IMG/VR virus record: IMGVR_UViG_3300036770_003657
Location: 335,797-399,796 of that record
Length of the DNA: 64,000 bases
Strand: one strand, 5' to 3'
In this document: positions 1,144 through 47,989 of the stretch, in pieces
How positions within the stretch are numbered: the first letter of the stretch is position 1
Layout of the letters: each line of letters begins with the position of its first letter
Made by a program: the position numbers and the translations under genes
Notes under the pieces: model-generated
The model's database searches: none
What the model was told of the DNA's origin: nothing
The model's input: only the letters and a program-made list of their open reading frames with translations

Positions 1144-1279
1144 AAAATTACTTATACTAGTTCTAACCTGTTACAATCTTTTTTAACACACCAAAAATAA
1201 TACCGATCATTGGTATGATCAATAGACTGAATCCAAATAATGCAATTAATCCTAATAAATATTTCATAAATAATTATAC

Positions 1280-1846
1280 ATGATTCTACAGATATTCACA
1301 CAGATTAATCGGCCCAATTTAGCCGATTCTTATAGTATTTGGATACCTTGCTTACGCACTGAGCCTGTAGAAATTTGTCCTATACAAACCACAAACATAT
1401 TTATTACTCATATTAATGCTGTAGAATACTGTAATCAAGACCTACACGACTATAAAATATATTGTATCGGACCCATTACTGAAGGTAGACTACGTGACAG
1501 AGGATATAATGTACATAGACTAGCAGATAAGGCCAGTGATGTAGCACTACCCGATGAACCTATAACTTGGCTACACGGGGATACTTATAGTAGAGATTTT
1601 AGCAGCAATCATAATGTGACTAGTCTACAGGATTACACTACCGTAGTGGATGAGGAAGCTATAGATAGATTAATATATTTAGAGTATAAATTTTTACACA
1701 TTTACAGCCCTAAAGTATTACGTGCCTACGAGAGCAGAAATCCTGAGCGTAAAATTCATTTATACTATACAGATAGCTGCATACCTAATCCAGACTTATA
1801 TGCTAGTATTACACGCTTTTATCCGGGTACTGATAAATACACTTAA
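1280..1846 (+). CDS. hemD: Divergent uroporphyrinogen-III synthase (HemD)-like protein
   Basis: HemD-like motifs in the expected order: WIPCLRTEP, IFITHINAVEY (cf. FTSxNAV), IYCIGPITEGRLRDRG (cf. vGxxTaxaLxxxG), ITWLHGD, VTSLQDYTT, HIYSPKVL (cf. ftSpsav). TAAATA at 1267-1272. Confidence 0.6.
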   Translation: MILQIFTQINRPNLADSYSIWIPCLRTEPVEICPIQTTNIFITHINAVEYCNQDLHDYKIYCIGPITEGRLRDRGYNVHRLADKASDVALPDEPITWLHGDTYSRDFSSNHNVTSLQDYTTVVDEEAIDRLIYLEYKFLHIYSPKVLRAYESRNPERKIHLYYTDSCIPNPDLYASITRFYPGTDKYT

Positions 1847-1942: not shown

Positions 1943-2251
1943 ATGAAAATACTACTAGCGGCCCTACTCTTGATACCCGCAGTGGTATCTGCTCAACAGA
2001 TCAAGCCGGTCAATAAAGTTGTTAACTGTGGCGATGCAAAATTAATAATTGGTGAACTACGCAAGGTAAAAGAAGATCCTGTATGGGTTGGTGACGTAGA
2101 TGACAATACCAACAGTCGTATGAGTCTATGGATTAGTAAAGAAAATAATACTTGGACTTTACTACAGAATAATGACAAAATAGCCTGTGTTATAGACTAT
2201 GGTAATAAGAATGTGTTTAGTTCAGAGTTGTTTGGCGGCAAAGGGGTTTAG
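1943..2251 (+). CDS. Exported hypothetical protein
   Basis: Signal peptide MKILLAALLLIPAVVSA; AGGAG RBS; two Cys. Confidence 0.75.
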   Translation: MKILLAALLLIPAVVSAQQIKPVNKVVNCGDAKLIIGELRKVKEDPVWVGDVDDNTNSRMSLWISKENNTWTLLQNNDKIACVIDYGNKNVFSSELFGGKGV

Positions 2252-2338: not shown

Positions 2339-3880
2339 TTATACTGCTCCTTGAGGTTGTGTTGTAGTAATAGGTTGTGGAGCTACTGGTTGTGGAGCTA
2401 TAGGTTGATTTGAAGTTACAGATCCAGGAATTCTAGTGCTTTGACCTTTTGTTAATTTTGGTTTAAGTTGAGGAATACGTCTTTCTAATTCATCTATTAT
2501 GTCTTTTGTAGGAAGTTTTTCAACAATAATAAGTTTCATTGTTGTGTCAATAATCTTATGTAAAATCCTTTCATTATTGATATTCCTTAATTTAGCTAAC
2601 TTTTGAGCCCAAGGAATAAGTTTTTCTACAAAATCGTCACTCTGTATATCTTTTGGCTTCTTAGCAAACTTACCTAATTCTTTGGCACTAACTTCACCGC
2701 CGAATGTTGTCGGCTGTACATAGATTTGTGGATACGCGGTTCTACCAGGATCATTTACCCCAGTCAAATAGATACTGTCTGCATGGAATCTTAATCCTTG
2801 GCTTATTAGATCTTCTGCACTATTATACCAAATTAAATTCCTATCATAAAGGTTGACAAATAGTACACCATCATCATGTTTAAGTGCCATATAGTTGTTA
2901 AAACTGGCCTGTGAATAGGCTTGTTTAGCTGCCCCTAGATCTCCATCTTGTATGGTCAATAAAATTTCTTTTATATTTCTTTTTAATCTAGCAGTATATT
3001 CTTTTCTTTCTGTTTGAGCGTTACCAAATATTTTTTCAACAACACTTTTTAATTTCTGCATAAAAGTACTTTGAATTTCACCAGTAACATTTTGATGAAA
3101 CTCTATAGCCTGTGTAAGACTTAGCCCTGATTTAGTTAATTGAAGTTTAAAACCTTTTCTATTTTTATAAGGTCCAGTACCTCGTACAAAGTCATTTAAA
3201 TCACGAGCAGCAGGATCCCAACCTTCAATTGGCCTAACTTCCTGATCTCCAAAACGAGCTGATGCTTTACTGGATTTTTCCTTGCCAGTTTCAGGATCTA
3301 CAGTGGTGGTCATACTGGCTGTTTTTACTTCAACTTGCCACATCCTACCATTCCATTCTGCTTTAAGGTCACCCTTACCATCATTAGGTTTGTTTATAGT
3401 TTTACTAAAAACATTTAGGGCAAATTCGCCTTTACCATGTCCCAATGTAGCTACATTCATTAGAGTATCCACTAACTCAGTGGTGATTGGGTTAGATCCG
3501 TAAGTATTAAAAACTTCTTCAAAGGAAACAGACTCACCTGAAAATAAAGCGTCTTTGTTTACAATTTTATCCTGTTTCCATAAACTAAACAGTTGATTAC
3601 GTTCTTCAGGAGTGCCATCTATGCTAAGAATATATCTTGTCAGATCTTTTTGTACTGCATTGACTGCAGGGTCATTAATACTTTGTAGGTCCTTTGCAAT
3701 TAAGCCTTTTCTTCCACCAGCATTTACATCACGTAATAAATCCTCAATCTCTCTTAAGGTTTTAATAGTGGCATCATCAGAAGGAAGGATTTTGATTTGG
3801 CTCGCAATCTTCTCCTTCCAATTATCCACAGCATCAGCTGCCATTTCAGCCAATAGTAATCTAAATTCTTTATATCGCAT
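2339..3880 (-). CDS. Putative head-associated protein with a PD-(D/E)XK nuclease-like motif
   Basis: 513 aa; N-terminus MRYKEFRLLLAE; GKGE...GD...EVK spacing; TAAATA at 3888-3893. Confidence 0.5.
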   Translation of the reverse strand: MRYKEFRLLLAEMAADAVDNWKEKIASQIKILPSDDATIKTLREIEDLLRDVNAGGRKGLIAKDLQSINDPAVNAVQKDLTRYILSIDGTPEERNQLFSLWKQDKIVNKDALFSGESVSFEEVFNTYGSNPITTELVDTLMNVATLGHGKGEFALNVFSKTINKPNDGKGDLKAEWNGRMWQVEVKTASMTTTVDPETGKEKSSKASARFGDQEVRPIEGWDPAARDLNDFVRGTGPYKNRKGFKLQLTKSGLSLTQAIEFHQNVTGEIQSTFMQKLKSVVEKIFGNAQTERKEYTARLKRNIKEILLTIQDGDLGAAKQAYSQASFNNYMALKHDDGVLFVNLYDRNLIWYNSAEDLISQGLRFHADSIYLTGVNDPGRTAYPQIYVQPTTFGGEVSAKELGKFAKKPKDIQSDDFVEKLIPWAQKLAKLRNINNERILHKIIDTTMKLIIVEKLPTKDIIDELERRIPQLKPKLTKGQSTRIPGSVTSNQPIAPQPVAPQPITTTQPQGAV

Positions 3881-3890
3881 AGTTAAGTAT

Positions 3891-4574
3891 TTACCTTAAC
3901 TCTGGAAACAAACACTCCTGTATGAATATACGTACATCTTCCTCATTCAATCCCAAACTGGTCATTACCTTAGGCGTATGTGGGTTCATCTTTTGGTTCT
4001 GTGCGTAAAAATTCTGTTGTTCGCTAGTATTAAGTACAGTGTTATTAGTTTCACCTACTGTGCTTAAGTAATGATCTACACCCTTGCGAGCCATTTCAAA
4101 GATTTGATCTAGTTCGTGTTCGTCCTGTACATTACCTGCTGCCACCATGCTCTTGCTGAATATACGGGTAGCCCAATCTGGTAGTGCTCTTTCCTTACGC
4201 CATTCCATCTTACTTACTTCGTTGGCAAACCATTCACACATAGGATGATTAGCATCCCCTGTAGGACTATAATCATAAAAACAGCCGGTAATTTTATTCT
4301 TACCGGCTATAACATCAAATCCAAAGATTGGGGCAGGGTTGTGTGTATGTGGAAATACGCAACAATGCATCATCCACAATCCCTTTTTCTCTCTAGCATC
4401 TACAACATCTACGTGAGCCCTACGATATGCTTCACTGGTCCAAACACGGTTTACCCATCCTGGTTGATTAAACCTATCCATACCTGGTTCAAATGCTTCA
4501 GTACCAGTGCGTTCAAAACTTTGCTCTAATAGGTGTTGTACATTAATTAGAGCGTCCCAAACTTTACTCTCCAT
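3891..4574 (-). CDS. pcyX: Ferredoxin-dependent bilin reductase, PcyX/PcyA type
   Basis: RRAHVDVVDAR, LWMMHCCVFP, PIFGFDVIAG and NQKMNPHT motifs; directly downstream of and overlapping heme oxygenase. Confidence 0.88.
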   Translation of the reverse strand: MESKVWDALINVQHLLEQSFERTGTEAFEPGMDRFNQPGWVNRVWTSEAYRRAHVDVVDAREKKGLWMMHCCVFPHTHNPAPIFGFDVIAGKNKITGCFYDYSPTGDANHPMCEWFANEVSKMEWRKERALPDWATRIFSKSMVAAGNVQDEHELDQIFEMARKGVDHYLSTVGETNNTVLNTSEQQNFYAQNQKMNPHTPKVMTSLGLNEEDVRIFIQECLFPELR

Positions 4575-5112
4575 TGTACAAATCCCTCATCATCTTAATG
4601 GCCCATTCAAAGGCCACACGAGCCTCATCACCTAACTCATCTGTGAGTTCGGCTCTGATTGCTACTTTAAGTTGATCAGGATTAGTAAACTCATAGAACT
4701 TGCCACTGCTAATGTGTGCTACTTGTTTCTTAATAATTAAGCCACCATTTAGGTCACCCATATGACGACAATACAAATGTGCCTTAAGTAAATGTCTACG
4801 TTCTAGGTCATTGGTTAGCTGGACCAAATAGTCATGATAGGCTAGGGTCTGTGGTAGCCAAACAAACTTGTGCTCTGGCCCAGCTAATTCCATAAAATCT
4901 TGATATATTGCTGGTAAACGCTCAATACCCTGTATGTTAGCAAAGTGTCCTAACATACGATTACCAAATTCAATTGGTCCGTATATGGGCAATAATTGGT
5001 ATAGATAATTTGCGTAATCTTCCTTACTAATTTTACCACTTAGTAATAGTTTAGCAAATTTAGTTGTTTCCGCCTCGTGATGTAAATCCTTAGTAATCTC
5101 TCTTAAACTCAT
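4564..5112 (-). CDS. hemO: Heme oxygenase
   Basis: TKDLHHEAE (proximal His) and HLYCRHMGDLNGG (distal helix). Confidence 0.92.
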   Translation of the reverse strand: MSLREITKDLHHEAETTKFAKLLLSGKISKEDYANYLYQLLPIYGPIEFGNRMLGHFANIQGIERLPAIYQDFMELAGPEHKFVWLPQTLAYHDYLVQLTNDLERRHLLKAHLYCRHMGDLNGGLIIKKQVAHISSGKFYEFTNPDQLKVAIRAELTDELGDEARVAFEWAIKMMRDLYNGE

Positions 5113-5438
5113 TCTTCCTCCATCTTCACTTGTAAGGGAAATCCGTTAGCCCTAGCCAAGCTAAATGTTTCACTTGATTTGACTTCTGCGATTTCATAAG
5201 TATATGTACCTGCAATACCACTTCCAGACTCGTGAATTTGAAGCGTAATATCTTTAGCTGTTTCGGGAGTATGTTTAAAAATTTCAATTAATATACTAAT
5301 TACAAACTCCATAGGAGTATGATTATCATTAAGGAAAACTACATGATATCGTTTGGGCTCAGACACCCTAATTTTAACTTTTTCATCTAGCACTACATCT
5401 GAGGTTACTTCTGTATCTACAGCCATTATTGACTCCAT
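5109..5438 (-). CDS. clpS: ATP-dependent Clp protease adaptor ClpS
   Basis: YHVVFLNDNHTPMEFV...IHESG...AEVK...ARANGFPL. Confidence 0.93.
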   Translation of the reverse strand: MESIMAVDTEVTSDVVLDEKVKIRVSEPKRYHVVFLNDNHTPMEFVISILIEIFKHTPETAKDITLQIHESGSGIAGTYTYEIAEVKSSETFSLARANGFPLQVKMEEE

Positions 5439-5444
5439 ATAAGT

Positions 5445-5462
5445 GGGGGAGTTTCCTCCCCC
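5445..5462 (-). other. GC-rich hairpin with GAAA loop between hsp20 and clpS (stabiliser or weak terminator)
   Basis: GGGGGAG-GAAA-CTCCCCC on the minus strand; no clear U-tract. Confidence 0.5.
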
Positions 5463-5468
5463 TGTTGA

Positions 5469-5906
5469 TCAAGCTACGTTGACTTGAATCTTCCTTGGCA
5501 ATAATGCTTCTGGAACGATTCGTTCGATTACTACAGTAAGTAATCCATTTTTAAGATCAGCACTCTTAACTTCCATATGTTCTGAAAGAGCAAATGTTCT
5601 ATCAAAACTACGATATGCTAGGCCCCTGTGAAGATATTCAATTTCTCCATCAGTTTCTACTGGCTTCTTTTCACCAGTAATGATTAACTGGTCCTGATCA
5701 ATACTTACATCAATTTCATCTCTACTAAAACCTGCTACTGCTAGGGTAATAGTGTAGATATCACCTTTGCGTTCTAGGTTATAGGGAGGATAGTTGTTAT
5801 TGGCCATACTGTTCCCCCAACTACGTTCCATAGTGTTAAAAATACGATCAAAACCAATCAGCGCTCTATTCAAAGCCGCTGTATCCATTCTAGCTAATTG
5901 TGTCAT
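5469..5906 (-). CDS. ibpA: Small heat shock protein (Hsp20/IbpA family)
   Basis: NYPPYNL, LAVAGF, YLHRGLAYRSFDRTFAL, A.LKNGLL. Confidence 0.93.
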   Translation of the reverse strand: MTQLARMDTAALNRALIGFDRIFNTMERSWGNSMANNNYPPYNLERKGDIYTITLAVAGFSRDEIDVSIDQDQLIITGEKKPVETDGEIEYLHRGLAYRSFDRTFALSEHMEVKSADLKNGLLTVVIERIVPEALLPRKIQVNVA

Positions 5907-5910
5907 AAAA

Positions 5911-5970
5911 TTTCTCCTTTATTAAGCAAGATGCGTGTAGCCTCACCTGAGCACTACACGACTATTTATA
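5911..5970 (-). promoter_or_regulatory. Late promoter TATAAATA plus ROSE-like RNA thermometer for hsp20
   Basis: TATAAATA at 5963-5970; 5' hairpin CGTGTAG/CTACACG; 3' hairpin UCUUGCUU-AAUA-AAGGAGA sequestering the SD. Confidence 0.7.
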
Positions 5971-5975
5971 AGGCA

Positions 5976-7853
5976 TTAGGCTGCGTTTTTAACTTCTGTA
6001 AAATCTACATCCGTAATGTCCTTATCCTGTTGTTGAGGCTGTGCGTTTTTAGCAGTGTAAATAACCTGTGCCGCAGCAGCTAGGTCACTCATCTTCTGTG
6101 TTATTGATTCCTTAGTACCTGTAGCAATCTCAGTTAATAGTGCTGTGATACTAGTTTCAATCTTATCTTTATCATCACTGCTAATCTTATCCTCAACTTC
6201 CTTCAAATCCTTACGAATTTGATGGACTTGTCCGTCTACGCTATTCCTTAAATCAACAATCTCACGCTGTTTGCGATCTTCCTCAGCGTTGGCTTCAGCT
6301 TCACGGATCATTTTTTCAATTTGATCCTTACTTAAACCACCATCTGATTTAATAGTGATCTTGTTTTCTTTGCCTGTAGTCTTATCCTTGGCACTAATTT
6401 TCATAATACCATTAGCATCTACATCAAAGGTTACTTCAATTTGAGGCATACCTCTGGGCTGTGGCATAATACCTTCTAGGTTAAACTCGCCTAGTAGTTT
6501 ATTATCCTTTACAAACTCACGTTCACCTTGGAATACCTTAATAGTGACAGCAGGTTGATTGTCATCTGCTGTGCTAAATGTTTGACTAGCCTTTGTGGGA
6601 ATAGTAGTATTCTTTTGAATGATCTTGGTCATTACTCCACCAAGTGTTTCAATACCAAGACTCAATGGTGTAACATCTAATAACAATACGTCATTGCGTT
6701 CGCCGCTTAGTACAGCACCTTGTACAGCAGCACCCACTGCCACTGCTTCATCTGGGTTAACATCCTTACGTGGCGCTTTACCAAATAACTTTTCTACAGC
6801 GTCCTGTACCTTGGGCATACGTGTCATACCACCAACTAAAATAATTTCATCAATATCTGCTGGTGTAACTCCTGCGTCTTTCATAGCAGTACGACAGGGA
6901 GCAATGCTACGTTCAATTAAATCTTCAACCAATGCTTCTAATTTAGCACGAGTAAGTTTTAGATTCATATGTTTTGGCCCGCTAGCATCAGCAGTAACAT
7001 ATGGTAGATTAATATCTGTTTGTTGGCTGCTACTTAATTCAATTTTAGCCTTTTCCGCTGCCTCTTTAAGACGTTGTAGAGCTAATACATCTTTAGTCAA
7101 GTCAATACCTTGATCCATCTTAAAAGTATCAACTAAGTAATCCATAATACGTTGGTCGAAGTCTTCACCACCTAAGAAAGTATCACCATTAGTGCTTAGT
7201 ACTTCAATTTGTTTGTCATTACCCAAGTTAGCAATTTCAATAATGCTAATATCAAAAGTGCCACCGCCCAAGTCATATACTGCTACCTTACGATCTTTTT
7301 TATCCGTCTTATCAACGCCGTAAGCCAACGCGGCAGCAGTCGGTTCATTAATGATGCGAAGAACTTCCAAGCCAGCAATACGGCCAGCATCTTTAGTAGC
7401 TTGACGCTGACTATCATTAAAATAGGCCGGAACAGTAATAACAGCTTGGGTAACATCATAACCTAAATAATCTTCAGCAGTCTTTTTCATTTTACGCAAT
7501 ACTTCTGCGCTGATTTGAGGAGGTGCTAACTCCTTGCCCTGTGCCTTAACCCAAGCATCACCACTTGAGTTTTCAATGATTTCATAGGGCATTAGATCTA
7601 AATCTTTTTGTACAGCCTCTTCTTTAAACTTACGTCCAATTAAGCGTTTGGCTGCGTATACTGTATTCTTTGGATTAGTAACAGCTTGTCTTTTAGCACT
7701 GGCACCTACAAGAATTTCTTCATCTGTATAGGCTACTATACTGGGAGTAGTACGTGCTCCTTCGCTGTTTTCAATTACTTTGGGATTGCCGCCTTCTATA
7801 ATGGCGACGCAACTGTTAGTAGTACCGAGATCGATACCGATTACCTTACTCAT
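5976..7853 (-). CDS. dnaK: Chaperone DnaK (Hsp70)
   Basis: [35 protein letters not shown]; 625 aa; betaproteobacterial-like segments ([25 protein letters not shown]). Confidence 0.98.
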
Positions 7854-10603: not shown

Positions 10604-10612
10604 ATCAAATAT

Positions 10613-11074
10613 TTATTTGAAAAAGCTCCACATCCTTGTACTTTCATCTAGACAGGCCCAGTGTTCTTCTGTGTTACGACTACTGGTAGTTCGTATTTCA
10701 CTATATACTCTACGACATAGTCTACCGCTTAGACGTTGAGTCATAATAATTTCAATAATGCCGTGATTGTAACTGTCATCGCTATACCAACGTATGACCT
10801 CACCATTGTCCAAATTACCAAGAGCGGTAAACATTGCCTGTTGATGCTTTCTACGATCATCTTCATTTAGTCCATCCAACATTCTGATTACACTATTTTT
10901 AATAGACCAAATGCTCTCAGGTAAACGAATTGTAACCTGTGCATTAGCCTGTGTGCTAGCGATTAATGCCGCGGCCGTCAATAACTTCCCAACTACCATC
11001 ACGCTTTTGGCAAGCATAGTTAATTCCTTCAATAATACGCCCATTGGGCAATTGTTGTTTATAGGGATGTTCAA
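10613..11074 (-). CDS. Exported protein resembling the 17-kDa surface antigen (RT0821/Lpp0805) C-terminal domain
   Basis: Signal peptide, then ALGNLDNGEVIRW...LCRRV...WAC; start uncertain. Confidence 0.5.
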   Translation of the reverse strand: MNIPINNNCPMGVLLKELTMLAKSVMVVGKLLTAAALIASTQANAQVTIRLPESIWSIKNSVIRMLDGLNEDDRRKHQQAMFTALGNLDNGEVIRWYSDDSYNHGIIEIIMTQRLSGRLCRRVYSEIRTTSSRNTEEHWACLDESTRMWSFFK

Positions 11075-17821: not shown

Positions 17822-18706
17822 TTACCATGTAGTAGTATTTTTACCACTATCTCCTATTATTTGTCCAATACTATATGCAGCAGGAGCAGCTACAAATTCC
17901 ACTGGATTATTATGATGTTGTGTTACCCAATCTCTTATTCTAGTCCAGTCTTGAAATAAGCTTTGTGTAGTTGTATATGTTCTTTTAGTACCTTTATTAG
18001 TCGTTAATTCGTAGCTATATGTAATTGTGTAAGTTAAATCATTGGTCCAATAATATATTTCAGATTCAGGTCTTGTTGGACATTCAGTTATATCATACTC
18101 TGTTAAAATTCTAGGAGTAGTGTGTGGAGCAGAGTCAGAAGTAGTAGCACTTGATAAATGATCAACATATTTCATTGTTCCAGTCGGTATCATATCATAA
18201 AATCCACTGGCTTCACAATTATCTGCATTGATAGTCAATGTAATATGATCTAAAAATCTTGGGCGTCTTGGCATACTAATATCAGTACATTGTACTTCAA
18301 TAATTTCTTCATCTTCTTCATCATTATACCATAAGTAAGGTATAGGATCATAATCTGGATTTGGTACTTCTCCTGCATAATTGCCATCACCATCATATGC
18401 AGCTATAGTTTGGGGTAAAAAATGTGCTGGGTTAGGGATATGTGGTGGTTTTACTATTGATGCTCCAACTGTAAAACTAAAATTAGCATAAATTTCTACA
18501 CTGCCTCCAGAACCAGACCAATTAAAAGTATTTCTATAGTCATAGCTATAACTAACACTGTCTCCAGGTTTATCATTACTAGAAGGAGTAAATGTTTCTG
18601 GAGCACGCCACTCTGCTCCATTTTTAAATGGAAAAATAAATGGAAAATCTGTATTAGGTGGAGGAGGTGACTGTATCAGTGTATAGCCATCTATTATCAC
18701 ACTCAT
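17822..18706 (-). CDS. Hypothetical protein, probably baseplate/tail-associated
   Basis: 294 aa, coupled between the giant fibre and PAAR genes. Confidence 0.6.
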   Translation of the reverse strand: MSVIIDGYTLIQSPPPPNTDFPFIFPFKNGAEWRAPETFTPSSNDKPGDSVSYSYDYRNTFNWSGSGGSVEIYANFSFTVGASIVKPPHIPNPAHFLPQTIAAYDGDGNYAGEVPNPDYDPIPYLWYNDEEDEEIIEVQCTDISMPRRPRFLDHITLTINADNCEASGFYDMIPTGTMKYVDHLSSATTSDSAPHTTPRILTEYDITECPTRPESEIYYWTNDLTYTITYSYELTTNKGTKRTYTTTQSLFQDWTRIRDWVTQHHNNPVEFVAAPAAYSIGQIIGDSGKNTTTW

Positions 18707-21700
18707 TATAGTCTCCCTACAACTACTTCAATAACGCCTTCATCACCATCAAAATCTTCTAGTGCTTTACCTATTACCATACCCATACGTGGATCATCAT
18801 GTGCCTTGGCATAGCCATCTCCTGCACTGACCAACATATCACCTTTGCTTATCTTACCACGTACCTTAACTGGTACACGACCTTGTAGAGCAACTGCTAC
18901 AACGTGTTCACCTTCTAGTTCACTGTTCATTAAGTGTGCTGGGTTCTTACTAACTACACCTACTACTTTACGTGTTAAATCTGTACCTATGGTAACTTCA
19001 TTTACTCCACCAATCATTAGAACTGTGCCTTCTTCGTATTTTGCATCAGCAAGATAGTTCTCTGCCAAGTCAGCATATTTTGCTTGTGTAGCTACACCAT
19101 TGAATACAGAAGCATATAATGTATCAGTAGCAGGATTACAGTATATACCACCTGTTCCATAAACACTGTTACCGCTACCCCATAGCATTTGGTATGTAGA
19201 ATTACTATCGTTATTGTAATTGATAGTAACTTGCGAGGAAGTGGAAGCTGAAGCAGCATTACCTGTACAGCTTCCTGAACTTCCACTTACATTACCTGTT
19301 ACATTTCCTGTTAGATTACCAGAAAATGTGGCAGTTATAGTACCTGCACTGAAATTACCACTTGCATCACGTTTGACTAATGTACTTGCTGTATTTGCTG
19401 TAGCACTTGATACATTAAAGGTAGTTCCACTTAATGAAAGATCGGTTCCGGCACTGTAAGTAGTATTAGTATCTGGATTAGCTGGCATAGTCAATGTTAT
19501 TGAACTAGTTCCTGTGATGTGTCCGTTTGCATCATAAGTAACACTAGGTATTTTAAATGTACCACCAAATGCCAGTGTTCTTGTTGCTCCTCCATCACTT
19601 ATTGTACCAGCTGTTACTGAATTACTATGATTAAACGTAGTTCCACTTAGAGATAATCCAGTTCCAGCACTATAGGTAGTATTAGTATCTGGATTAGCTG
19701 GCATAGTCAATGTAATAGTATTGGTACCAGTAATATGTCCATATGCATCATAAGTAACACTAGGTATTTTAAATGTACCACCAAATGCCAGTGTTCTTGT
19801 TGCTCCACCATCACTTACTGTACCAGCTGTTATTGCACTATTGGCATGCCCTAAAGTTATTGTACCTGCTGTACTTTGATTAGCAGTAAACGTACCGGTA
19901 CCAGTTAATCCATTATTACCCTGTACAGTAAGTGTACCATTGCCTATACTGACTGTAGCTGTAGCTACACTAGCAGCAGTAACGTGACCATAACCATCAA
20001 ACTCAAAACTAATATCTTGTATAAATGTATTATCACTGTTATCACTGCTTAAATTACCTACACTGCTAGTGTCAGCATGACTTAGTGTAATAGTACCTGC
20101 TGTACTTTGATTAGCTGTAAATGTACCACTACCAGTTAATCCATTGTTACCCTGTACAGTAAGTGTACCGTTACCTATACTAACTGTGGCAGTAGCTACA
20201 CTAGCACTAGTAACGTGTCCAAATCCATCAAAATCAAAACTAATATCTTGTATAAATGTATTACCACTATTATCACTGCTTAAATTACCTACACTGCTAG
20301 TGTCAGCATGAGAAATATTAACAGTGACACCTTCACCACTTCCTGAAATAGTTAACCCACTAGTTCCAGTTTGACTACCTGGAGTTCCAGAACTTACTGC
20401 TGCTATATAATTACCAGTAGTATCAGTTCCTAGTGCTACACTATCAATTCCAATAGTTGTAGTCATGCTAACATTGTTAGATCCATCAAATGTCACACTA
20501 CCACTAACATCACCAGTTAAGGCAATAGTTCTGGCTGTAGCTAATTTTGTAGCAGTGTCAGCGTTCCCACTCAATCCACCACTTACACTACCTTGGAAAG
20601 TTCCTGCGATAACAGTTGACCCTGCTCCAAATGTCCATTTATCAACACTTTCATCCCATAATAAACTTACGTTGGTATCAGTACCTCTTTCTATTTCTAT
20701 ACCAGCATTTTGTGTTGGTTCAGCAGTTTCGTTACTATTCAGTACAATGATATTATCAGCTAACTCAATAGTTTCAGTATTGATTGTAGTAGTTGTGCCA
20801 CTTACTGTTAGATTACCACCAATAACAGTATTACCTGTAACGTTAAAGTTTCCACCAACATTAAGGTTTTCAGTTACCGCTACTCCACCAGTAACAATTA
20901 AAGTACCAGTTGACGTATTTGTACTGGATATATTACCTGCCATTTCAATACGGCCAGTCCCAAATACCTTAAACTTATCTGCACTGGCTAAATTAGTAGG
21001 TCCACCATAAGTAAAGGCTATGTAGCTGGTAGTATCAGTTACCGTAATAACCTTATCTATAGCCCAATGACTCTTTAGGTTATTATCCTTTACAAACGCA
21101 CTACCATTCCAATTTAAATTAGTTAACCAACTAAATCTATTGGTTGTTCCTACACTAGTAAATCTAGTTTTAAAATCTGTAGTATAAGCACTTTGTAAAG
21201 TAACACTAGTTAATGCCCCACTGCCATTGTAGGTAATATTAAAAGTTGGATCATCTATAGTAGGTGCTGCTTTATAAATCACCTGTCCACCAGTAGTAAA
21301 GTTAATAGTGCTACCATCAGTGGCTTGGAACGTCATGGTGTTACTTGCTGTTAATGTCTTAGCATTAGCCAATGTAAATGTACCTGTGCTGTTGGAAATA
21401 GTCATTCCATTTACAGTCTTATTGGTCAATGCTTCTGTACCTGCCAATGTAGCCAATGTACCTGTCGTTGGGAAGGTTACACTGGTTGCAGCAGTCATAG
21501 TAAATGTGCTGGCATATGCTCCTGATGTAGTTAAGTTACCTCCTAAGGTTATAGTCTTTGTACCATTGTTAACACCAGTGCCACCATATGTTGGGCTAAT
21601 TATGCTGGCTTGCCAAGTACCTGTACTAATAGTGCCTACTCCAGTTAGACTACTATTGACAACACCTGAACCTAATGTTGTACTACTCAATACATCTACA

Positions 21701-24700
21701 CCGTTGATCTTATAAGTTTTACCTGTGGCAAGATCCATGTTCTCACTACTGGTCCAGCTACTTGTAGATTGTATCCAACGGAAAAGTTTATCAGTGGTGC
21801 CTTTTATTGTTATACCACCTCCAGCTGCTGTAGCATCAGTAATTCCACCAGTGTTGAAAACTACAGCCACTCCATTTGGACTAATTTGATCTGGTGGTGT
21901 ATCAGCTGTAAACGTAAACAAATTAGCACCATTAATAGCAGTTACTCTTGGATTGGCACCTAATTGACCACCACTTACTCTACTCAATGTCATCCCAGGA
22001 ATCATTCCTGCTGTACTAGCAGTAATTGTAGTTGTCAGTGCTCCAATAGCGGTAAAGTTAATATTGCCACTACGACTTGATATTGGTTCTACTGAGCCTA
22101 ATTCAATATTGTTATCATCCATTTGGATGTCATATGCATTAAGAGTGCTGGCAGCACCGGTAATATTAACATTACCATTTACAGTGAGCCCGTTTAAGGT
22201 TATGCTGTCGGTCCAAACTGGACGTTTATTAGCACTGCCTAAACTCACTGGCTGAACATTTAACACAGAATTAGTATCACCTATAGGTAATTTTTGTATT
22301 ATGGTGGAGCCACTGGCATATAACATGTCCCCGACAGTATAACTGGCAATATTAGTACCACCCTTATCTACAGGAACTTGACCAATAATATTACTTGGTG
22401 TTAGATAATATAATCCATCTTGTCCATCTAGAGTACCTGCATCTACTACACCTGATTTAATACCAACAGCACCCTGACTACCTCCGGTACCTACTTCAAA
22501 TTGACTCTTATTAAATGACGCTACACCTAAGTTTGTATGGCCAGGGATATTTGCATTTTCCTGTCCTCCACTGACTACATCCACACCAACAGTAACTTCA
22601 TTGTAGAATTCTTGTATGCCTCCAGGTCCTGGATCAAAGAATGGGCCAGTTATAGTAATAGCACTATCAACACTTGGTTTTTTGATCTTTTGTACGGCCT
22701 TGGCCCATGTACTATCGCCTCTTAAAAAGGTGTTACTATTAGCAGTACCAATAGCTAATCTAGTAGTGCTCATTATACCACTAACAATATTAGTTGTATC
22801 TATATTACTGGCGCTTAGACTACTCCAGTTTTCTGCCAGTATACTAGCATTATCTACAACACCAATAATTTTAATGCTTTGCTTTCTAAAACTAGCAACC
22901 CCAGTACCAGTATTAGTAAAATTAAATGCACCAATAGTAAGACCTAATGTACTGGCCACTGCATCAGCTCTACCTTCATGTATAGTAAAGGTGTTAGTAG
23001 TCACACTTCCTACAAAGAATATGCTGTTAGTTAGTATACCGTATGGTGGATCTGCTGCAATAATTTTTACTGCATCACCAGTAGCAAATCCATGATCTGG
23101 AATATAAACTGTATCTTTGGTGATATCTAATATAGATAATGTTAAAGTTTGATTACCTGCACCAGAGTTAACAATTGTTAACTTGGTTGATAGACTATAA
23201 GTTGTATAAAGTTCAATAGTATCAGCATCAATACTTTTCACATAATAGATGCTATTATTAACAATCCCACCTAATGGTGTTCCAAATCCTGCATTATATT
23301 GTACAGCATCACCATCATCAAATGGGTGACCAACGATAGTTATACGACTTAGCGCAGTATTAACATTGCCTCCTGAACCTGTACTAGCAGCATTAAATGT
23401 AGCAACTACAGTACTGTCTAATTGATCAGTTGTTTTCGTTACAACATTTGCATCTTCTGTAAATTCTGGGGCTATACTATTTGCATTAAACTTCAATGCG
23501 CCAACAATATCAACATACACACGATTTTGTATTTGGCTAACCTTAACACTAAATGCGCTTCCACCTGTACGTCCATTCAAATTTGCATCATTTGCACTGA
23601 GTCTATCTACTGTGGTATACCCACTTCCACCGGCAGTTAGTACTACATTAGTAACGACTCCACCACTTAGGAACAGGTCTGCCCTAGCTCCAGTTCCTGA
23701 TCCTCCTGTTAAAGGCACATCAGTATAAAATCCTGAAGGTGGTTGAGTATATCCACTACCCCCTGCTAATCCTGTTACTGGATCATTGCTATTATCTAGT
23801 GCATTAGCAACACCTTCTACAATATATTCTATAGTGCCTTGTGCTTGACTATTACTACCTGTTACACTAGTTACTCCTGTAAAATCATAAGTTTGAGTTG
23901 GGTCTAATAGTAATATCTGTTTACTATCTAATTCACTTAAAATGTAATTGGTATTTTGATCTGGAATAATACCTCCTACTAGGGTAGGTGTTAATCCAGT
24001 GCTTGCACCATTAAGAGTTATTTCTCCTACAGTATCAAATGTATCGTCAAAAAATTCACCTAAACTTCCAATGACTACAGTAGTAGAATTATTGCCACCG
24101 ACTACTCGACCAGTTGCTCCAGAACTGGCTTGTAGGATTAAGTCACCATCAACGGCCACTAATACACCATCTAGAGTCAACGATACTCCACTATATGTTT
24201 CAATGGCTAAATCACCATTTAAAATACTAGTAGGAGGTACTGTATTGACCAAGTTTAGTCTACTACGATATCCATTACTTCTATATACTAAGAAGTTTCT
24301 TAATGGTGGTATCTGATCAGCACTTAATTTTCCTAGTGCATTTAACTGAGGGATACCACCTGGTTGAGTAGTAGTTGTAAGTTCTTTGTCAATAAAGTCT
24401 CCTAGTCTATTTTCTAAGAAACTTCTAACAGCCAACTGTGTGCTTAATCTATTATGACTTGGTCCGCCTACTTCATTATCACCGAGATCAATATCAGCAC
24501 TAAATTCTTCAATAGTAATATTACCAACAGCCAACTTCAACGCATCTAAAGCAGCAATACTAACAGTGTTTGTAAATTGTACATTACCTGTTTTGTTTTC
24601 AGCTTTAATAAAATCACCAACTTTAAAGTCACCAAGTTCATTGGTTCCTGAACTATATACACGCCCTGGTAATTCACTGACTTGTTCATATTCAACTCTA

Positions 24701-27700
24701 GTACGTCCACCGTTTTGTGGTAATGCATTATAGTCAGTTCCGCTACCTGCATATTCCCAAGTGTGGCTACTGCTGTTAACAATACTAGGTCTATGCAACC
24801 ATATCTGTTTACTTGGCAGTGTTTCTAAATTGATTAGTTCATTACCACTGGTAGTGGCCAATATCTTAAATGTTGCCGTGTATAAGTTATCTACGTTTTG
24901 GACATCAGTTACATCAATATTTAAAATAGCAGGGCTACCATTGTCATATTGAATAACAGTATCTAAGGTAAAGTTATTTCTAATAAAATTTTCCCCAACT
25001 AATACTTTTTCTACGCTAACAACTAGGCTTCGTGTTGTTGGATCCCAACTGAATATATATGCTCTATTTGGTGTTATACCACTGGTTGTACCTTCGATTA
25101 CTCTACCTGGAATAAATGTATAACTTTGTCCTATAGGAGGAGGTTCTACTTGTAATTTTTGATATACAACGTGACTTTCAGTGAGATCATCAATAAAAAA
25201 TTCTTTAATATTCTTTAATAAAAGATGTTCACCTGTTGGTAGTGGAGCAGTAAATTTTGCCTTTATTTCAAAACCATCGTCCAAATATAATTCAAATTGA
25301 TTGGCATTTAAAATTTTAATTACATAAGTTTGTTCGTCATAAAGACCTTTAATTAAACTATTTCCATTAGCTCTATAAACTATTTTCTCTGTATTTTGAA
25401 AACCGTGAGCAGGAATTGTTATGACATTAGTATTGACATTTATAACTGGTTCGATTTGTGCAGGACTAGTTCCTGGAATGGTGACATTATTACTTGGTGT
25501 AAAAGGTACCTGATCATCCACCTGTTTGTAACTATTAGTTACATCTCCAATATTACTATAGTCAACTATTTCTGGAACATTAATGATACTGTCAATAATA
25601 TCTATAATGATATCAAATAAATCACCAACTCTACTCTGTGCATCAGGATGTACTAGCGCAATAGTTAACGATTTTAGTTCTTGGAAGGCAGCAATATTTT
25701 GAGTTCTTTGATTTATTAGAGCTGCCACAGTGCTTGTAGAATAGGCTACACCAGCTTCAACGCTTTTACTATTGCCTCCTGTTAGTACATCATATGCTAC
25801 TGCCTCTAATACTAGTAAAGTATCTCTTCTACAAGTATCTTGATCATATGTAAATCCTGTATAATATGGCGCTGTGTTGGCAGTTACTTGGCTGTCAATC
25901 CAAGTTATTAGTGCATCTCTTAATTCTTCTTTGTTATTTAAAATTGTACTATATGTTTCTCTATATACAGGATTTCTAAATCTTATTACATAGTGCTGTA
26001 CTGGTAGGTCCCCAAAACCAATAGCAGTAATAGTTTGTTGTGCTCCTGCGCTGCCTGTAGCAACTACAATACCTTTATTAAAATCAAAAGCATTAGGACT
26101 ATAACCATTGGCCCTTAAAGCAAATTGACCAAAGTTAGTAGCACTATTGGTAATACTTAGATATCCACCGCTTTGACAATAACTACCATTTAAACAGAAG
26201 ATCTGGAAACAGCTAACAATCTGTGCATATGCATCATTAATAACACGATATCCTGTACCCCCAAAGCTCAACATAGTAAATGCATTACCTACCATTGATT
26301 TACCTTGTTGCGGAGCAGGTCCTTCTACTGGGTTCTCTGCTTCAATTTGATTAACAGGTATATTTGGTGTACGTACTTTACTACCATCAACCAATACACC
26401 ATTACCACCTAAGAAGCTGATTATACTACAGTTCTGCACATATGGGCTAATACTAATAACTGGTTTATTATTTGGTAGTCTAGTATATCCTACACGACTA
26501 CATTCTGGATCAGCTGGATCATCAAACGCCACTGCATAGTCAAATGTAAAGCTAGGTATATTGTTTACATCCAGTGCATCTCTGAAAGTTATCTCTGTAA
26601 AATAACAGCCATTACGTACACGTAGCATATCCTTACCAGCATTAAGTGGTCTAATATTACAGGCACGTAGACCAGCTCCTACTACACTAACGTTATCTGG
26701 AATAATAATTGGATTATCTTCGTAATAGTCTCCACTAGCAACTGCTATAACAATACGCTTTTCGTTTGGAATGTAGTCAGCAACAAAAGCTACAGTTTCG
26801 GTTTGAATGATTTCCTTGTCTGCTAGTAATGCTGCTCTAGCATCACTCTTAGTTGGACTTATTGGTGTAGCATTAGGATATTCTGTATTTGGTGCTTGAC
26901 TGGGTCCTTGATCTATAATTGTTACTACATATCCTAAAAGTTCCTGAGCTTTATCTATGGCAGCACTGCTGGCTGGATCTCCTACACCAAATGCGTTGAG
27001 ATCATTTTCTAATACTAAATTGATTATTTCTTCTTTCAAATATCTATATGTTATTGCACTGGCTTGTCTATCATTGAATATAGGTAATCCCATTCCATAA
27101 CTAAAATATTTTTTAGCAGCATCTATAGTTTGACTATTGCCACCATACATTAGGTCATAGGCTAAACTGTAGACTAGATATCTTATATCACGAGCGCACT
27201 TTTCTTCATTATAAGTAAAGTTATTAAACTCAACAGTAATAAATTGACTTACTCCAGTAATAATAGCAGCTTTGTTTTCCTGTATCAGTCCAAAATTAAG
27301 TTGCGTTGTTGGATTAGCCGAACTAATGTCTGGAAATACTTTATTGTTTAAAGAACTAGTATTTTCATCTGTAATAACATCAATGATTATATCAACTAAA
27401 TCTTGGCATTTGATAGTTTGTTCAGAATTAGTAGCAGGATATAATGAAGTATCTTGTGTAAGAAGATTGGTACTAGATTTAGTAATTGGTACTGCGTTAA
27501 CAATATCACCAATAATCTCTTGTAGTCTTGTATATGCTGCTAGTGTTTGTGCCTTCTCACCAGCACCTAATTGTAGCACGGCTCCAAATATATAAGCTTC
27601 TGCATTAGAATAGGTTGCACTATTACCGCCATATAATACATCGTATGTTATAGCATCAACTATAAATTCTACATCACGTCTACATTTATCTATTATACTT

Positions 27701-30700
27701 CCTGGGGTGCTGGCATATGATGGATAAGTATCAATTAACCAAGCAATGACTTCCTCTCTAATAAATGCTTTATTTGTTTGTAATTGATTTTTAGCATTTA
27801 AAACTGCAACTTCTGCATTACTGGGATCAGTGAAAGACACTGCATCAATAGCAGGATAACCTTCCTCAAGAAAATCAATTATTTCCTGTACTTTATTTTT
27901 ATAGCTTAAGAAGAATGTGCCACTGGTTACATATTGTTCACTTTCTCTGTATAATTGTTTTAATGCTGCTGCTGTCTGTATCTTTTGATTATAGAAAGTG
28001 CCTAATTGATTCTGTCTATCATAACTATATTGATTTTGTCTAGTATTTAAGTTAGTTCCCAGTACTATGTCATATATAGCTCCTTCAATGACTAGACTCA
28101 TATCTCTTTCACATTTGGTTACTGTGGGGCCAGTATAACTAAATCCTAAAAATGTATTATTGACATAGTTAGTACCTTGATCAACTATATATTCAATATT
28201 ATCTAATAATAAGTCTTTGGCATTGACATAACCTACTGGCAATCCTGCAGGAGTTGGCATAGTAATTGCAGGTAATATTGTAGGTATTTTAGCAATACCA
28301 TCTCCAGTACCAGGTACAGCGGCTACAAAGGTATCTCCTACTGTATAAGATTCACCAGTAGTACCAGCTACAGCGTTCCAATCAGTGCTTCCTAATACTT
28401 CAATTTCATACGTAATACCCGCAACTAAATCTGTTACAGGATATGATACATCAACTACGTTGATTAAGTCACCAGCATATGTATTCGCCAGTATGTTTGT
28501 AATACTTTGAATACTGGCAGCTACTTCAGTTGCCTCAGTTCCACTTTGAGTATCTACAGCCTTTAACAATAGATAGTTTAAAGCTCTAATGGTAATATCT
28601 TTTTGACTAATTAGTACTGCACTGGCTGTGGCATTGCTATAGGTAAATCCTGCCTTTACGCTTTGCCAATTACTGCCATAGATAAGATCATATCCAATAG
28701 CATCAATAATTAAACCAACATCTCTAAAACAAGTTTGATCATTAAATTCATTTCTTTGTTTATAGACTAAATTACTGGCTATTTGTAGGGCACGTTTAAT
28801 AGTTTTTACTGGTTTATTAATGCCATCAAAATTATCATCACCATTAGTTGCACTAACAGCTACTTGTCCACCACCAAATAAATCAGCACTAACAAATTCT
28901 AATTTATTTCCATCTCGATTAAGTGATAATATTGATCCATCTACACCTAAAACTCTTGGAAATGTTAATGTATAACTGTTTACAAACTCTTCCGGTGTTG
29001 TTCCTGCTGGGGCACGTAATCCTACATAGTTATTGCCGTTTGAAGTTAACTCTTTTAATCTAATCTCGCCTTGATTATTAACATTAAGACCGTCAGTGTT
29101 GATTAAGGTAGATCTTATTGTAGATGGAGTTGTCTCACCTATCCTAGTATTATCAATAGTTCCACTGTTGATATCTACGTTGGCTAATGTGCTAGTGCCA
29201 TCTACAGTAAGATCTTCAGCAATATACACATTGTTGTTTACTGTAATATTATTTACTGTAATATCATCTAATAACAAACTGCCTAAAGTTGCTTGGCCAG
29301 TAACATCGAGGTCACCACCAATATTAACATTACCAGTAGTATCAAGTGTATTGGCATCAATGTTATCAGCATTTATATCATTACTTGTTATTGTGCCTGT
29401 GAAATTACTAGTACCAGTAACATCTAGATTGCCACCTACATGTAAGTTTTCGCTTATTCCTACACCACCTGTTACTACGACGGTTCCAGTAGTTGTATCG
29501 GTAGAACCTATATTAGCCTTTGCATATACCTGTCCATCTAAATTAGTCTCTAAATTAACTGTTAAGTTTTCAATAGTAGCATTATCAAGTACATCTAATA
29601 TATCAGTTTCTATATTAGTGGCATCAACGTCACCAGTCAAATCACCTGTAACATCACCTGTAACATTACCAGTATACATAGCATCGGTACCTGTAGTACC
29701 TCTATCCAATATTACAGTTTCAGTGACTACACCACCAGTGTCCTTATAAAGAATAATATCTGTGTATGCTTTTGCATCAAACCCATTAGTACCATTTTCA
29801 AAAACTTTTACACTTACATTTTCAGCAAATATATCACCAGTGCTTGGTCCAATAATAGTACCTTCAAACTCACCAATAAATCTTTCAGTGGCTTCGATTA
29901 TTGTTCCTGTTATGGCTCTAGGTTCTTCTGCTCCAATTACAGTGGCATCAATATTCCCACCATTTATATCAACTTGATCTAACCTACTAAGCCCATAACT
30001 GGTTATATTACCACTTACCTTACCGATAAACTCAGCTTCTACATAACCTGAATCTAAGGGTGCTCCACCTGTACCATTCTCCAATACTTTTGTAATACCA
30101 TCTTCAGCATAGATATCACCAGCAAAATTTCCGCTTATGCTACCTTCAACATTACCATAGAATACAGGTGGTTGATAACTTAATACATTTGTTGGGCCAC
30201 CTGTTCCATTATCTAATATTTTAGTAGTGCCATCAGCAGCATATAAATCACCAACTACATTACCTTCTAGTTTACCAACAAATTTTACACTGGCAGTAAT
30301 TACAGTTCCTGTGATTAAGGTAGGACCGCTATTACCAATTATAGTGCTGTTAATAAATCCACCGTTTAATAACAAACTACTTATTTGACTGGTTCCAGTA
30401 GTTTGAGTTATTCGACCTAACAATTCACCTGTAAAAGTTGCATCTGTTCCATTGGTGCCATTCTCTAAAACTTTTACTCCACTATCGCTATAAATATCAC
30501 CAAAAACATCACCAAACAAGTTACCAGTAATATTGCCTTGAATGTTAGCTAGAATTTCTTCTTCTACATTTATACTATTGGCTACTATATCGCCAGCTAC
30601 ATTAAGATCGCCTCCAATACCTACTCCACCAGATACAATCAATGTTCCTGTATATGGGTCTAAACTAGGCGTATTATCAGAAAGTATTGTTTTAACATTA

Positions 30701-31035: not shown

Positions 31036-31074
31036 AATAGTATTTATTAGGAACGATTTGGATAGTAAACTAGT

Positions 31075-41087: not shown

Positions 41088-41094
41088 TCCATAT

Positions 41095-41490
41095 TTATCT
41101 TAACATTTCAAAACTAATGTTGACACCAGGCATCCATAAAGCTGGTGTACAATCAACTGTTTCTGTAAGGTTAGGTATATAAGGAACTAGTTTAAAGTCC
41201 TTTTTAAGCAGAGCGACATCATCATGTTCTTCTAAGAATACAAACTCCATTTCAACACGCCATTCAAATAGCCAAATATTGCTAAGTTTTTTTCCTACCA
41301 TACCGTATGTTTCAGGTATACCAATAATCACTTTAGGATCATGATCAAATTGGATGTTCGATCTCATTCCAATGGTATTGAGTAATGTGTCAAAGTTTTG
41401 TTGTTGGCTTCGAGCCTGTTCTTTGCCTTCTTCGTTACGATATTGTTTTGTATGGCTAATGTCTACAGTGGTATAAAGTCTATATTGCAT
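41095..41490 (-). CDS. Hypothetical protein
   Basis: 131 aa; TAAATA upstream. Confidence 0.7.
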   Translation of the reverse strand: MQYRLYTTVDISHTKQYRNEEGKEQARSQQQNFDTLLNTIGMRSNIQFDHDPKVIIGIPETYGMVGKKLSNIWLFEWRVEMEFVFLEEHDDVALLKKDFKLVPYIPNLTETVDCTPALWMPGVNISFEMLR

Positions 41491-46768: not shown

Positions 46769-46784
46769 TATTTATCAATAAATA
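46769..46784. promoter_or_regulatory. Back-to-back late promoter cores
   Basis: TAAATA on minus (46769-46774) and on plus (46779-46784, 8 nt before the hemA ATG). Confidence 0.65.
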
Positions 46785-46792
46785 CTAGTACT

Positions 46793-47989
46793 ATGATAGA
46801 TAAAATCCACTTCAAACGCTTAATCGGCGACTTAAAAGATTCGGGCAAATATCGTGTGTTCAACAATATAGTCCGTGAAAAAGGTAAATTTCCAAACTCA
46901 ATATGGTACGGTCCATACGCAATCAAGAACATCGTTAACTGGTGCTCTAACGATTACCTCGGAATGGGTCAGCACAAAGTTGTCATAGACGCAATGCACA
47001 CTGCACTAGATCAAACTGGTTCAGGGTCAGGTGGTACTAGAAACATCGGCGGGACCAGTACTTATCACGTTGCTTTGGAAACAGAACTAGCATTCTTACA
47101 TCGTAAGGATCGTGCTTTATTATTCAGCAGTGCTTATGTGGCTAATGAATGGAGTCTTATAGCACTGAGTAAAATTGTACCTAATATACACTTTGTGAGC
47201 GATAGTAAAAATCACAATAGTCTAATAGTAGGTATCAGTCATAGTAAGGCTCCGAAAACCGTGTTCACACACAACGATATGGAAAACCTTGAAAGCATAC
47301 TTAAAGCAGTTAGAGATGCTGGAGAGACTCCTTGCGTAGTGTTTGAAAGCGTATACAGTATGGATGGCGATGTTAGCACGATGACTGAAATATGTGACCT
47401 TGCTGACAAATACGAAGCCATTACCTATATTGATGAAGTACACGCAGTAGGCCTATATGGTGAACGTGGTGCAGGTAAGTTGGAAGAACTTAAACTACAA
47501 CATCGTGTGGACATTGTAAATGGTACATTAGGTAAAGCATATGGTGTACAAGGCGGATATATAGCGGCAGATAGTGAAGTGGTAGATGCTATACGCAGTG
47601 TAAGTCATGGCTTTATCTTTACTACAAGTATGAGCCCTGTTAGTTGTGCTGGTGCATTATCAGCAGTTAAATTTCTTAAAGAACATAATGAAATAAGAGA
47701 AAAGCATCAGGAGCGTGCCAATAGACTAAAAACATTATTGAAACAAAATGATCTTCCACTTATGAATACTAGTACACATATTGTGCCAGTGCTTGTAGGC
47801 AATGCTGTTCGTGCTAAGGCAATGAGCGATGCCCTACTAGAAGATCATAACATATATGTTCAACCTATAAATTATCCTACAGTGGCAGTAGGCACAGAGA
47901 GACTACGTTTTGCTCCAACTCCATATCATGATGATGGTATGATGGAGAAGTTAATTGTGGGATTGAAGGATATTTTTAGTCGGATTTAA
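46793..47989 (+). CDS. hemA: 5-aminolevulinate synthase (C4/Shemin pathway)
   Basis: [56 protein letters not shown] (PLP Lys), [15 protein letters not shown]. Confidence 0.93.

Follow-up and report, generated by a model that had tools for sequence, protein, structure and literature searches.

We analyzed a stretch of 64,000 nucleotides (the window) that forms the last 64 kb of a 399,796-bp IMG/VR virus record (IMGVR_UViG_3300036770_003657, hereafter G000), which is estimated complete and encodes a T4-type major capsid protein (Pfam Gp23, E 1e-98). Near-identical DNA occurs in a subsurface metagenome, and related DNA occurs in lake and freshwater metagenomes. Near the start of the window lies an ORF of 188 codons that resembles uroporphyrinogen-III synthase (UroS/HemD), preceded by two ATAAATA motifs and followed by a small protein with a signal-peptide-like N-terminus, an unknown protein, a ferredoxin-dependent bilin reductase and a haem oxygenase (Table 1). 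The 513-aa unknown protein belongs to large virus-only clusters and shows faint structural likeness to PD-(D/E)XK nucleases, and is probably unrelated to tetrapyrroles.

Table 1. Features of the window, of the rest of the record (C1) and of related loci (L), with supporting scores.
Location	Strand	Feature	Score or remark
Window 1255-1261 and 1266-1272	+	Two ATAAATA motifs resembling the T4 late promoter	The second ends 7 nt before the ATG
Window 1280-1846	+	Compact HemD-like gene, 188 aa	ATG at 1280, stop at 1844-1846
Window 1943-2251	+	102-aa protein with signal-peptide-like N-terminus	Strong AAGGAG ribosome-binding site
Window 2339-3880	-	513-aa unknown protein	
Window 3891-4574	-	Ferredoxin-dependent bilin reductase (PcyA/PcyX-like)	Pfam Fe_bilin_red E 1.2e-15; weak match to the NCBIfam PcyA model
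Window 4564-5112	-	Haem oxygenase (HemO)	Pfam Heme_oxygenase E 5.5e-21
Window 5109-7853		ClpS, small heat-shock protein and DnaK cluster	Directly beside HemO and the bilin reductase, on the same strand
Window 10610-10616, 31041-31047, 41092-41098		ATAAATA motifs	
Window 18706-31035	-	Single ORF of 4109 codons	
Window 46778-46784		ATAAATA motif	Ends 8 nt before the AlaS start
Window 46793-47989	+	5-aminolevulinate synthase (AlaS)	TIGR01821, 557.9 bits (cut-off 338.55); Pfam Aminotran_1_2
C1:7980-8981		Porphobilinogen synthase (HemB)	447 bits (cut-off 297)
C1:21812-22684		Oxygen-dependent coproporphyrinogen oxidase (HemF)	416 bits (cut-off 297)
C1:271383-272003 (L016:3384-4004)	- (in L016)	Unknown ORF of about 190-207 aa, downstream of hemC-hemE	No Pfam family
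C1:272081-273184		Uroporphyrinogen decarboxylase (HemE)	435 bits (cut-off 303)
C1:273181-274194		Hydroxymethylbilane synthase (HemC)	339 bits (cut-off 164)
C1:274423-274983 (L016:6424-6984)	- (in L016)	Unknown ORF of 187 aa, upstream of hemC-hemE	No Pfam family
C1:293247-294329		Ferrochelatase (HemH)	308 bits (cut-off 125)
L005:15048-15296		Ribosomal protein S21 homologue in a relative	
L085:1501-2334	-	Divergent ALAD/HemB	About 149 bits
L087:828-2018 and L088:828-2018		RuBisCO large-subunit-like gene, 396 aa	

The ORF and its upstream motifs

The ORF starts at the first possible start codon after an upstream stop. The initial annotation had described six HemD-like motifs in this ORF, and we confirmed that all six are present in the order given: P23-C-L25-R-T-E-P29, I42-T43-H-I-N46-A-V48, C62-I-G64-P-I-T67-E-G-R-L71-R-D-R-G75, L98-H-G100, Y119-T-T121 and Y142-S143-P144. 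The motifs are not chance, as they fall on the equivalent HEM4 columns in a profile-profile alignment (TSxNAV, ciGxxT...g, the Gly of LxG, Yxt and fS) and are also the most conserved columns of the family. Seventeen metagenomic proteins of 179-189 aa are 43-90% identical to the ORF and share its start, MILQIF or M(K/R)QIY, while one 224-aa entry looks like a mis-called start. Nei-Gojobori dN/dS was 0.08-0.13 for the pairs whose synonymous distance (dS) is below 1, showing purifying selection. The G+C of the ORF is 0.358, close to the 0.366 of the genome.

The impression that the gene is unannotated also holds. No PHROG family matched the ORF or ten relatives, no source gives a name beyond 'hypothetical protein', and tblastn of four family members against 50,697 GenBank phage records found no match. 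The family of roughly 190 aa has so far been found only in uncultured aquatic phage contigs.

The TAAATA noted upstream lies at 1267-1272 with 7 nt to the ATG, and is part of CATAAATA, while a second copy, AATAAATA, ends at 1261. No Shine-Dalgarno sequence is evident for the ORF, and a scan for sigma-70 promoters and terminators around it was at chance level. ATAAATA is depleted in the window overall (26 seen against 37 expected), yet 41 of its 90 copies in the genome lie within 40 nt upstream of 327 ORFs of at least 100 aa, and in 20 of those 41 ORFs it ends within 10 nt of the ATG (4-8 nt in the window examples checked). So it is a real gene-start signal, although calling it a late promoter, as the initial annotation did, is an inference from T4. 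The shared signal 7-8 nt before the starts of both the HemD-like gene and AlaS, together with its concentration in front of genes, suggests common, probably late, T4-style transcription giving leaderless or near-leaderless mRNAs.

Homology to HEM4 and predicted fold

The only Pfam hit of the ORF is HEM4 (PF02602), at 20.9 bits (E 2e-4) over residues 49-86 only. This is below the gathering score of 27.5, and the NCBIfam UroS equivalogs, with cut-offs of 240-400 bits, gave only 11.7-17.8 bits. A profile of the close family searched against PDB sequences found no hit at E <= 10. However, when the same kind of profile was searched without a word filter against 1.84 billion representative proteins, only 39 proteins were found at E <= 1e-3, comprising relatives of roughly 180-200 aa, some fragments and, in the tail, proteins of 203-241 aa. 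These tail proteins were retrieved at E 2e-6 to 6e-4 and are recognized by Pfam as full-length HEM4 at E 1e-11 to 1e-57. Twelve of 20 scanned proteins hit HEM4 at E <= 0.01, seven of them short-family members and five canonical, and further short-family relatives gave sub-threshold hits on different segments; no family member passes the cut-off. Comparing profiles of 15 diverse short-family members and the five canonical proteins with hhalign gave 98.5% probability and E 2e-15 over 151 columns (ORF residues 18-168). Additionally, 85 of the 100 nearest ESM Atlas clusters by language-model features carry HEM4. Homology to HemD is therefore close to certain.

The AlphaFold2 model built on the family alignment has a mean pLDDT of 85 and a pTM of 0.76, and predicts the two alpha/beta lobes of HemD, connected by a beta-ladder hinge and with a cleft between them. 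Foldseek places uroporphyrinogen-III synthases in the first 13 PDB ranks and the first 21 Swiss-Prot ranks, all at probability 0.99-1.00, after which probabilities collapse. The global TM-scores are modest, which is expected for an enzyme whose two lobes swing. Solved UroS structures include those of P. aeruginosa (4es6), P. syringae (3re1), T. thermophilus (1wcx/3d8x series), H. pylori (3p9z) and human (1jr2).

In the alignments, T43-H-I-N-A-V matches the canonical T-S-x-N-A-V loop, G64-P-I-T67 matches the first G-x-x-T, Y119 matches the conserved Tyr, which in the human enzyme is found within V-Y-Q-T, and S143 matches the F-S-S position. The phage protein is nevertheless about 55 residues shorter than the canonical enzyme of about 240 aa (240-260 aa, 25-30 kDa). 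Counted between these anchors against a canonical 241-aa protein (P0053), it is shorter in every segment, by 10, 7, 6, 7, 5, 2 and 16 residues (53 in all), with the largest losses in the first helix and the C-terminal part. There, the second G-x-x-T motif of lobe 1 is replaced by an invariant T164-D-S-C-x-P-N. Positions conserved across the family also include W97-L-H-G-D, R105-D-F-S and F180-Y-P, which have no known role.

The Tyr implicated in loss of the hydroxyl group of hydroxymethylbilane (Roessner 2002, cited in PMC7242693) is replaced by Phe and His in two subfamilies of the short family (P0020 and P0090, respectively). [quoted passage not shown] The variation of the Tyr therefore weakens the case for activity but does not exclude it.

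A shared fold does not prove a shared reaction, and the protein might instead be a relic or regulatory member of the HEM4 superfamily with no role in tetrapyrrole chemistry. Uncharacterized HemD-like proteins such as B. subtilis YjjA and Rickettsia RP474 do appear among the fold matches, the protein scores below the curated thresholds, and the subfamilies in T4-like phages lie beside structural and replication genes. However, we consider this unlikely given the strong purifying selection, the conserved HemD motif positions, and the genomic context described below.

Tetrapyrrole genes in the phage genome and its relatives

The whole record was searched with Pfam models and the ORFs were then scored with NCBIfam. 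AlaS, HemB, HemC, HemE, HemF and HemH all score above the equivalog cut-offs (Table 1), i.e., the phage carries six of the eight canonical haem-pathway steps. With haem oxygenase and the bilin reductase, eight recognized enzymes of tetrapyrrole metabolism are present. The initial annotation had proposed a second phage-encoded step of tetrapyrrole synthesis feeding heme/bilin production; this reading is supported, and the pathway context is stronger than it supposed. Two steps of the classical pathway have no recognized gene. For UroS, the only HEM4-like place in the record is the ORF under study, while the same search gave a signal in 14 of 14 control genomes. For protoporphyrinogen oxidase, no HemY, HemJ or HemG was found, and this step is either left to the host, non-enzymatic, or done by an unrecognized protein. 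HemN, uroporphyrinogen methyltransferase and CobS were not found either.

The haem genes are scattered among phage genes, and their G+C of 0.375-0.434 fits the 0.365 +/- 0.04 of the genome. The hemC-hemE pair also recurs in independent phage-like contigs with the same neighbours, so contamination or chimerism is unlikely. The phage HemC clade is nearest to betaproteobacterial enzymes (Methylophilaceae, Chitinibacter, Fluviibacter) at 55-57% identity, which hints at the host group. Among GenBank phages, HemB, HemC and HemE matched only records at 26-58% identity that, from their names (Salmonella enterica WGS contigs, multi-contig 'phage' assemblies), look like host DNA filed as phage, and searches of IMG/VR for related loci with single phage HemE and HemC proteins found nothing. 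In phage contigs related to G000 (L087 and L088), the RuBisCO large-subunit-like gene lies about 8 kb upstream of hemC.

As bacteria habitually place hemD beside hemC, the true UroS of the phage could be one of the two unknown ORFs flanking hemC-hemE, which keep their place in relatives down to 66% HemC identity (also in L087-L090). However, neither resembles the short family or canonical HEM4, with hhalign probabilities of 0.06-0.5%, both sequences look helical rather than alpha/beta, and the nearest Atlas clusters of the 187-aa ORF are viral hypothetical proteins and DUF6847. We therefore regard them as very unlikely UroS enzymes, although they could be further pathway components and remain candidates for the missing oxidase.

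Within the clade of G000, the HemD-like gene stays within about 2.5 kb of the bilin reductase and HemO, down to 43% identity, while the flanking methyltransferase and a small secreted protein change sides. A 102-aa ORF follows the gene in the related loci L005-L007, and a 106-aa ORF precedes it in L002. Relatives also carry the ribosomal protein S21 homologue nearby. More distant subfamilies (25-38% identity) lie elsewhere: between a baseplate gene and a homing endonuclease / 2OG-Fe(II) oxygenase / gp46-gp47 block in T4-like contigs, among small ORFs in a 286-kb contig, and in an 11-kb contig with no haem gene nearby. At the level of whole records, however, they still travel with tetrapyrrole genes. 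The record of the P0090 subfamily (82.6 kb) has an AlaS-like gene and HemO, that of the P0072 subfamily (69.9 kb) has an ALAD about 11 kb away, and 11 of the 12 longest records of the P0055 subfamily have a very divergent ALAD about 10 kb away. The latter is 26-30% identical to the HemBs matched by tblastn, and some copies contain one in-frame TAA. No HemC or AlaS was seen in the P0055 set, but these records are only 7-37% complete, so nothing follows from the absence. Without a measure of how often T4-like phages lacking the gene carry ALAD, the association is suggestive rather than quantified. Notably, three or four divergent lineages thus combine the gene with otherwise rare phage tetrapyrrole genes, which argues against a role outside tetrapyrrole chemistry.

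Proposed function and comparison with known systems

Collectively, our results suggest that the ORF probably encodes a compact, phage-specific form of uroporphyrinogen-III synthase (EC 4.2.1.75), with catalysis, timing of expression and physiological purpose inferred from homology and context. HemC releases hydroxymethylbilane, which cyclizes within minutes to the useless I isomer unless UroS is present, and UroS is a cofactor-free monomer that closes the ring through a spiro intermediate with inversion of ring D (PMC7242693; PMC13564367). The phage protein appears to keep the hinge, both lobes and three of the four loop motifs. We propose that it takes hydroxymethylbilane made by the HemC of the phage and the host, holds it in the cleft between its two small lobes, and closes the ring to give uroporphyrinogen III. 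This product would feed phage HemE, HemF, a protoporphyrinogen oxidase that is host-supplied or unrecognized, and HemH, and the resulting haem could be converted to a bilin by haem oxygenase and the bilin reductase. A phage that drives flux with its own AlaS, HemB and HemC would need matching UroS capacity, as the extra flux would otherwise spill into the dead-end uroporphyrinogen I, and phage AlaS is reported to lack the haem feedback site (PMC11480375).

Alternatively, the HemD fold might have been repurposed to bind, deliver, chaperone or isomerize another linear tetrapyrrole, for example the biliverdin or bilin made by the neighbouring haem oxygenase and bilin reductase. The gene lies 2-3 kb from these two genes but 63 kb from hemC-hemE, it has lost the second GxxT motif, and its Tyr varies within the family. 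The role of phage HemO and bilin reductases in non-cyanobacterial hosts is unexplained (PMC11480375), and such a protein would give the HemO/PcyX cassettes of phages of non-photosynthetic hosts a partner. However, the phage would then have HemC and HemE with nothing between them, distant subfamilies sit far from any HemO or bilin reductase while a HemB lies about 10 kb away in the same records, and proximity within one phage clade may simply be inherited gene order. We therefore find this reading unlikely, though not excluded.

Phage tetrapyrrole genes are known from similar large aquatic phages as valaS, hemO and pcyA/pcyX cassettes (Wegner et al., 2024, PMC11480375; Chen et al., 2020, bioRxiv 10.1101/2020.02.13.942896), and pebS, cobS, cobL and bchE have also been published. 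These two papers report the first step and the catabolic steps, and do not mention hemB, hemC, hemD, hemE, hemF or hemH. A 'ferrochelatase' has been reported in pelagiphages (PMC11561400), and a coproporphyrinogen oxidase in one temperate phage (bioRxiv 10.64898/2026.05.02.722434). In the literature searched, which does not prove absence, we found no report of a phage hemD or of a phage with the intermediate steps. The HemD-like gene would thus close the gap in what appears to be the first nearly complete virus-encoded route from glycine and succinyl-CoA to haem.

Compact size and the HEM4 fold are shared with short bacterial HEM4 proteins, i.e., ESM Atlas clusters of about 183 and 202 aa and the H. 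pylori HemD of 213-229 aa, which are among the nearest clusters by features and by structure. Those proteins carry a Pfam HEM4 hit, whereas the phage family does not reach the cut-off. If active, the phage protein would be the smallest natural uroporphyrinogen-III synthase and a minimal scaffold for an enzyme whose catalytic residues are still undefined. As some haem-making organisms still lack an annotated UroS (PMC13564367), a profile of this family could also help to find their missing enzyme. The family is widespread in uncultured aquatic T4-like phages, with 50 IMG/VR loci for one subfamily, and with no name, no PHROG and no cultured representative it is missed by AMG surveys.
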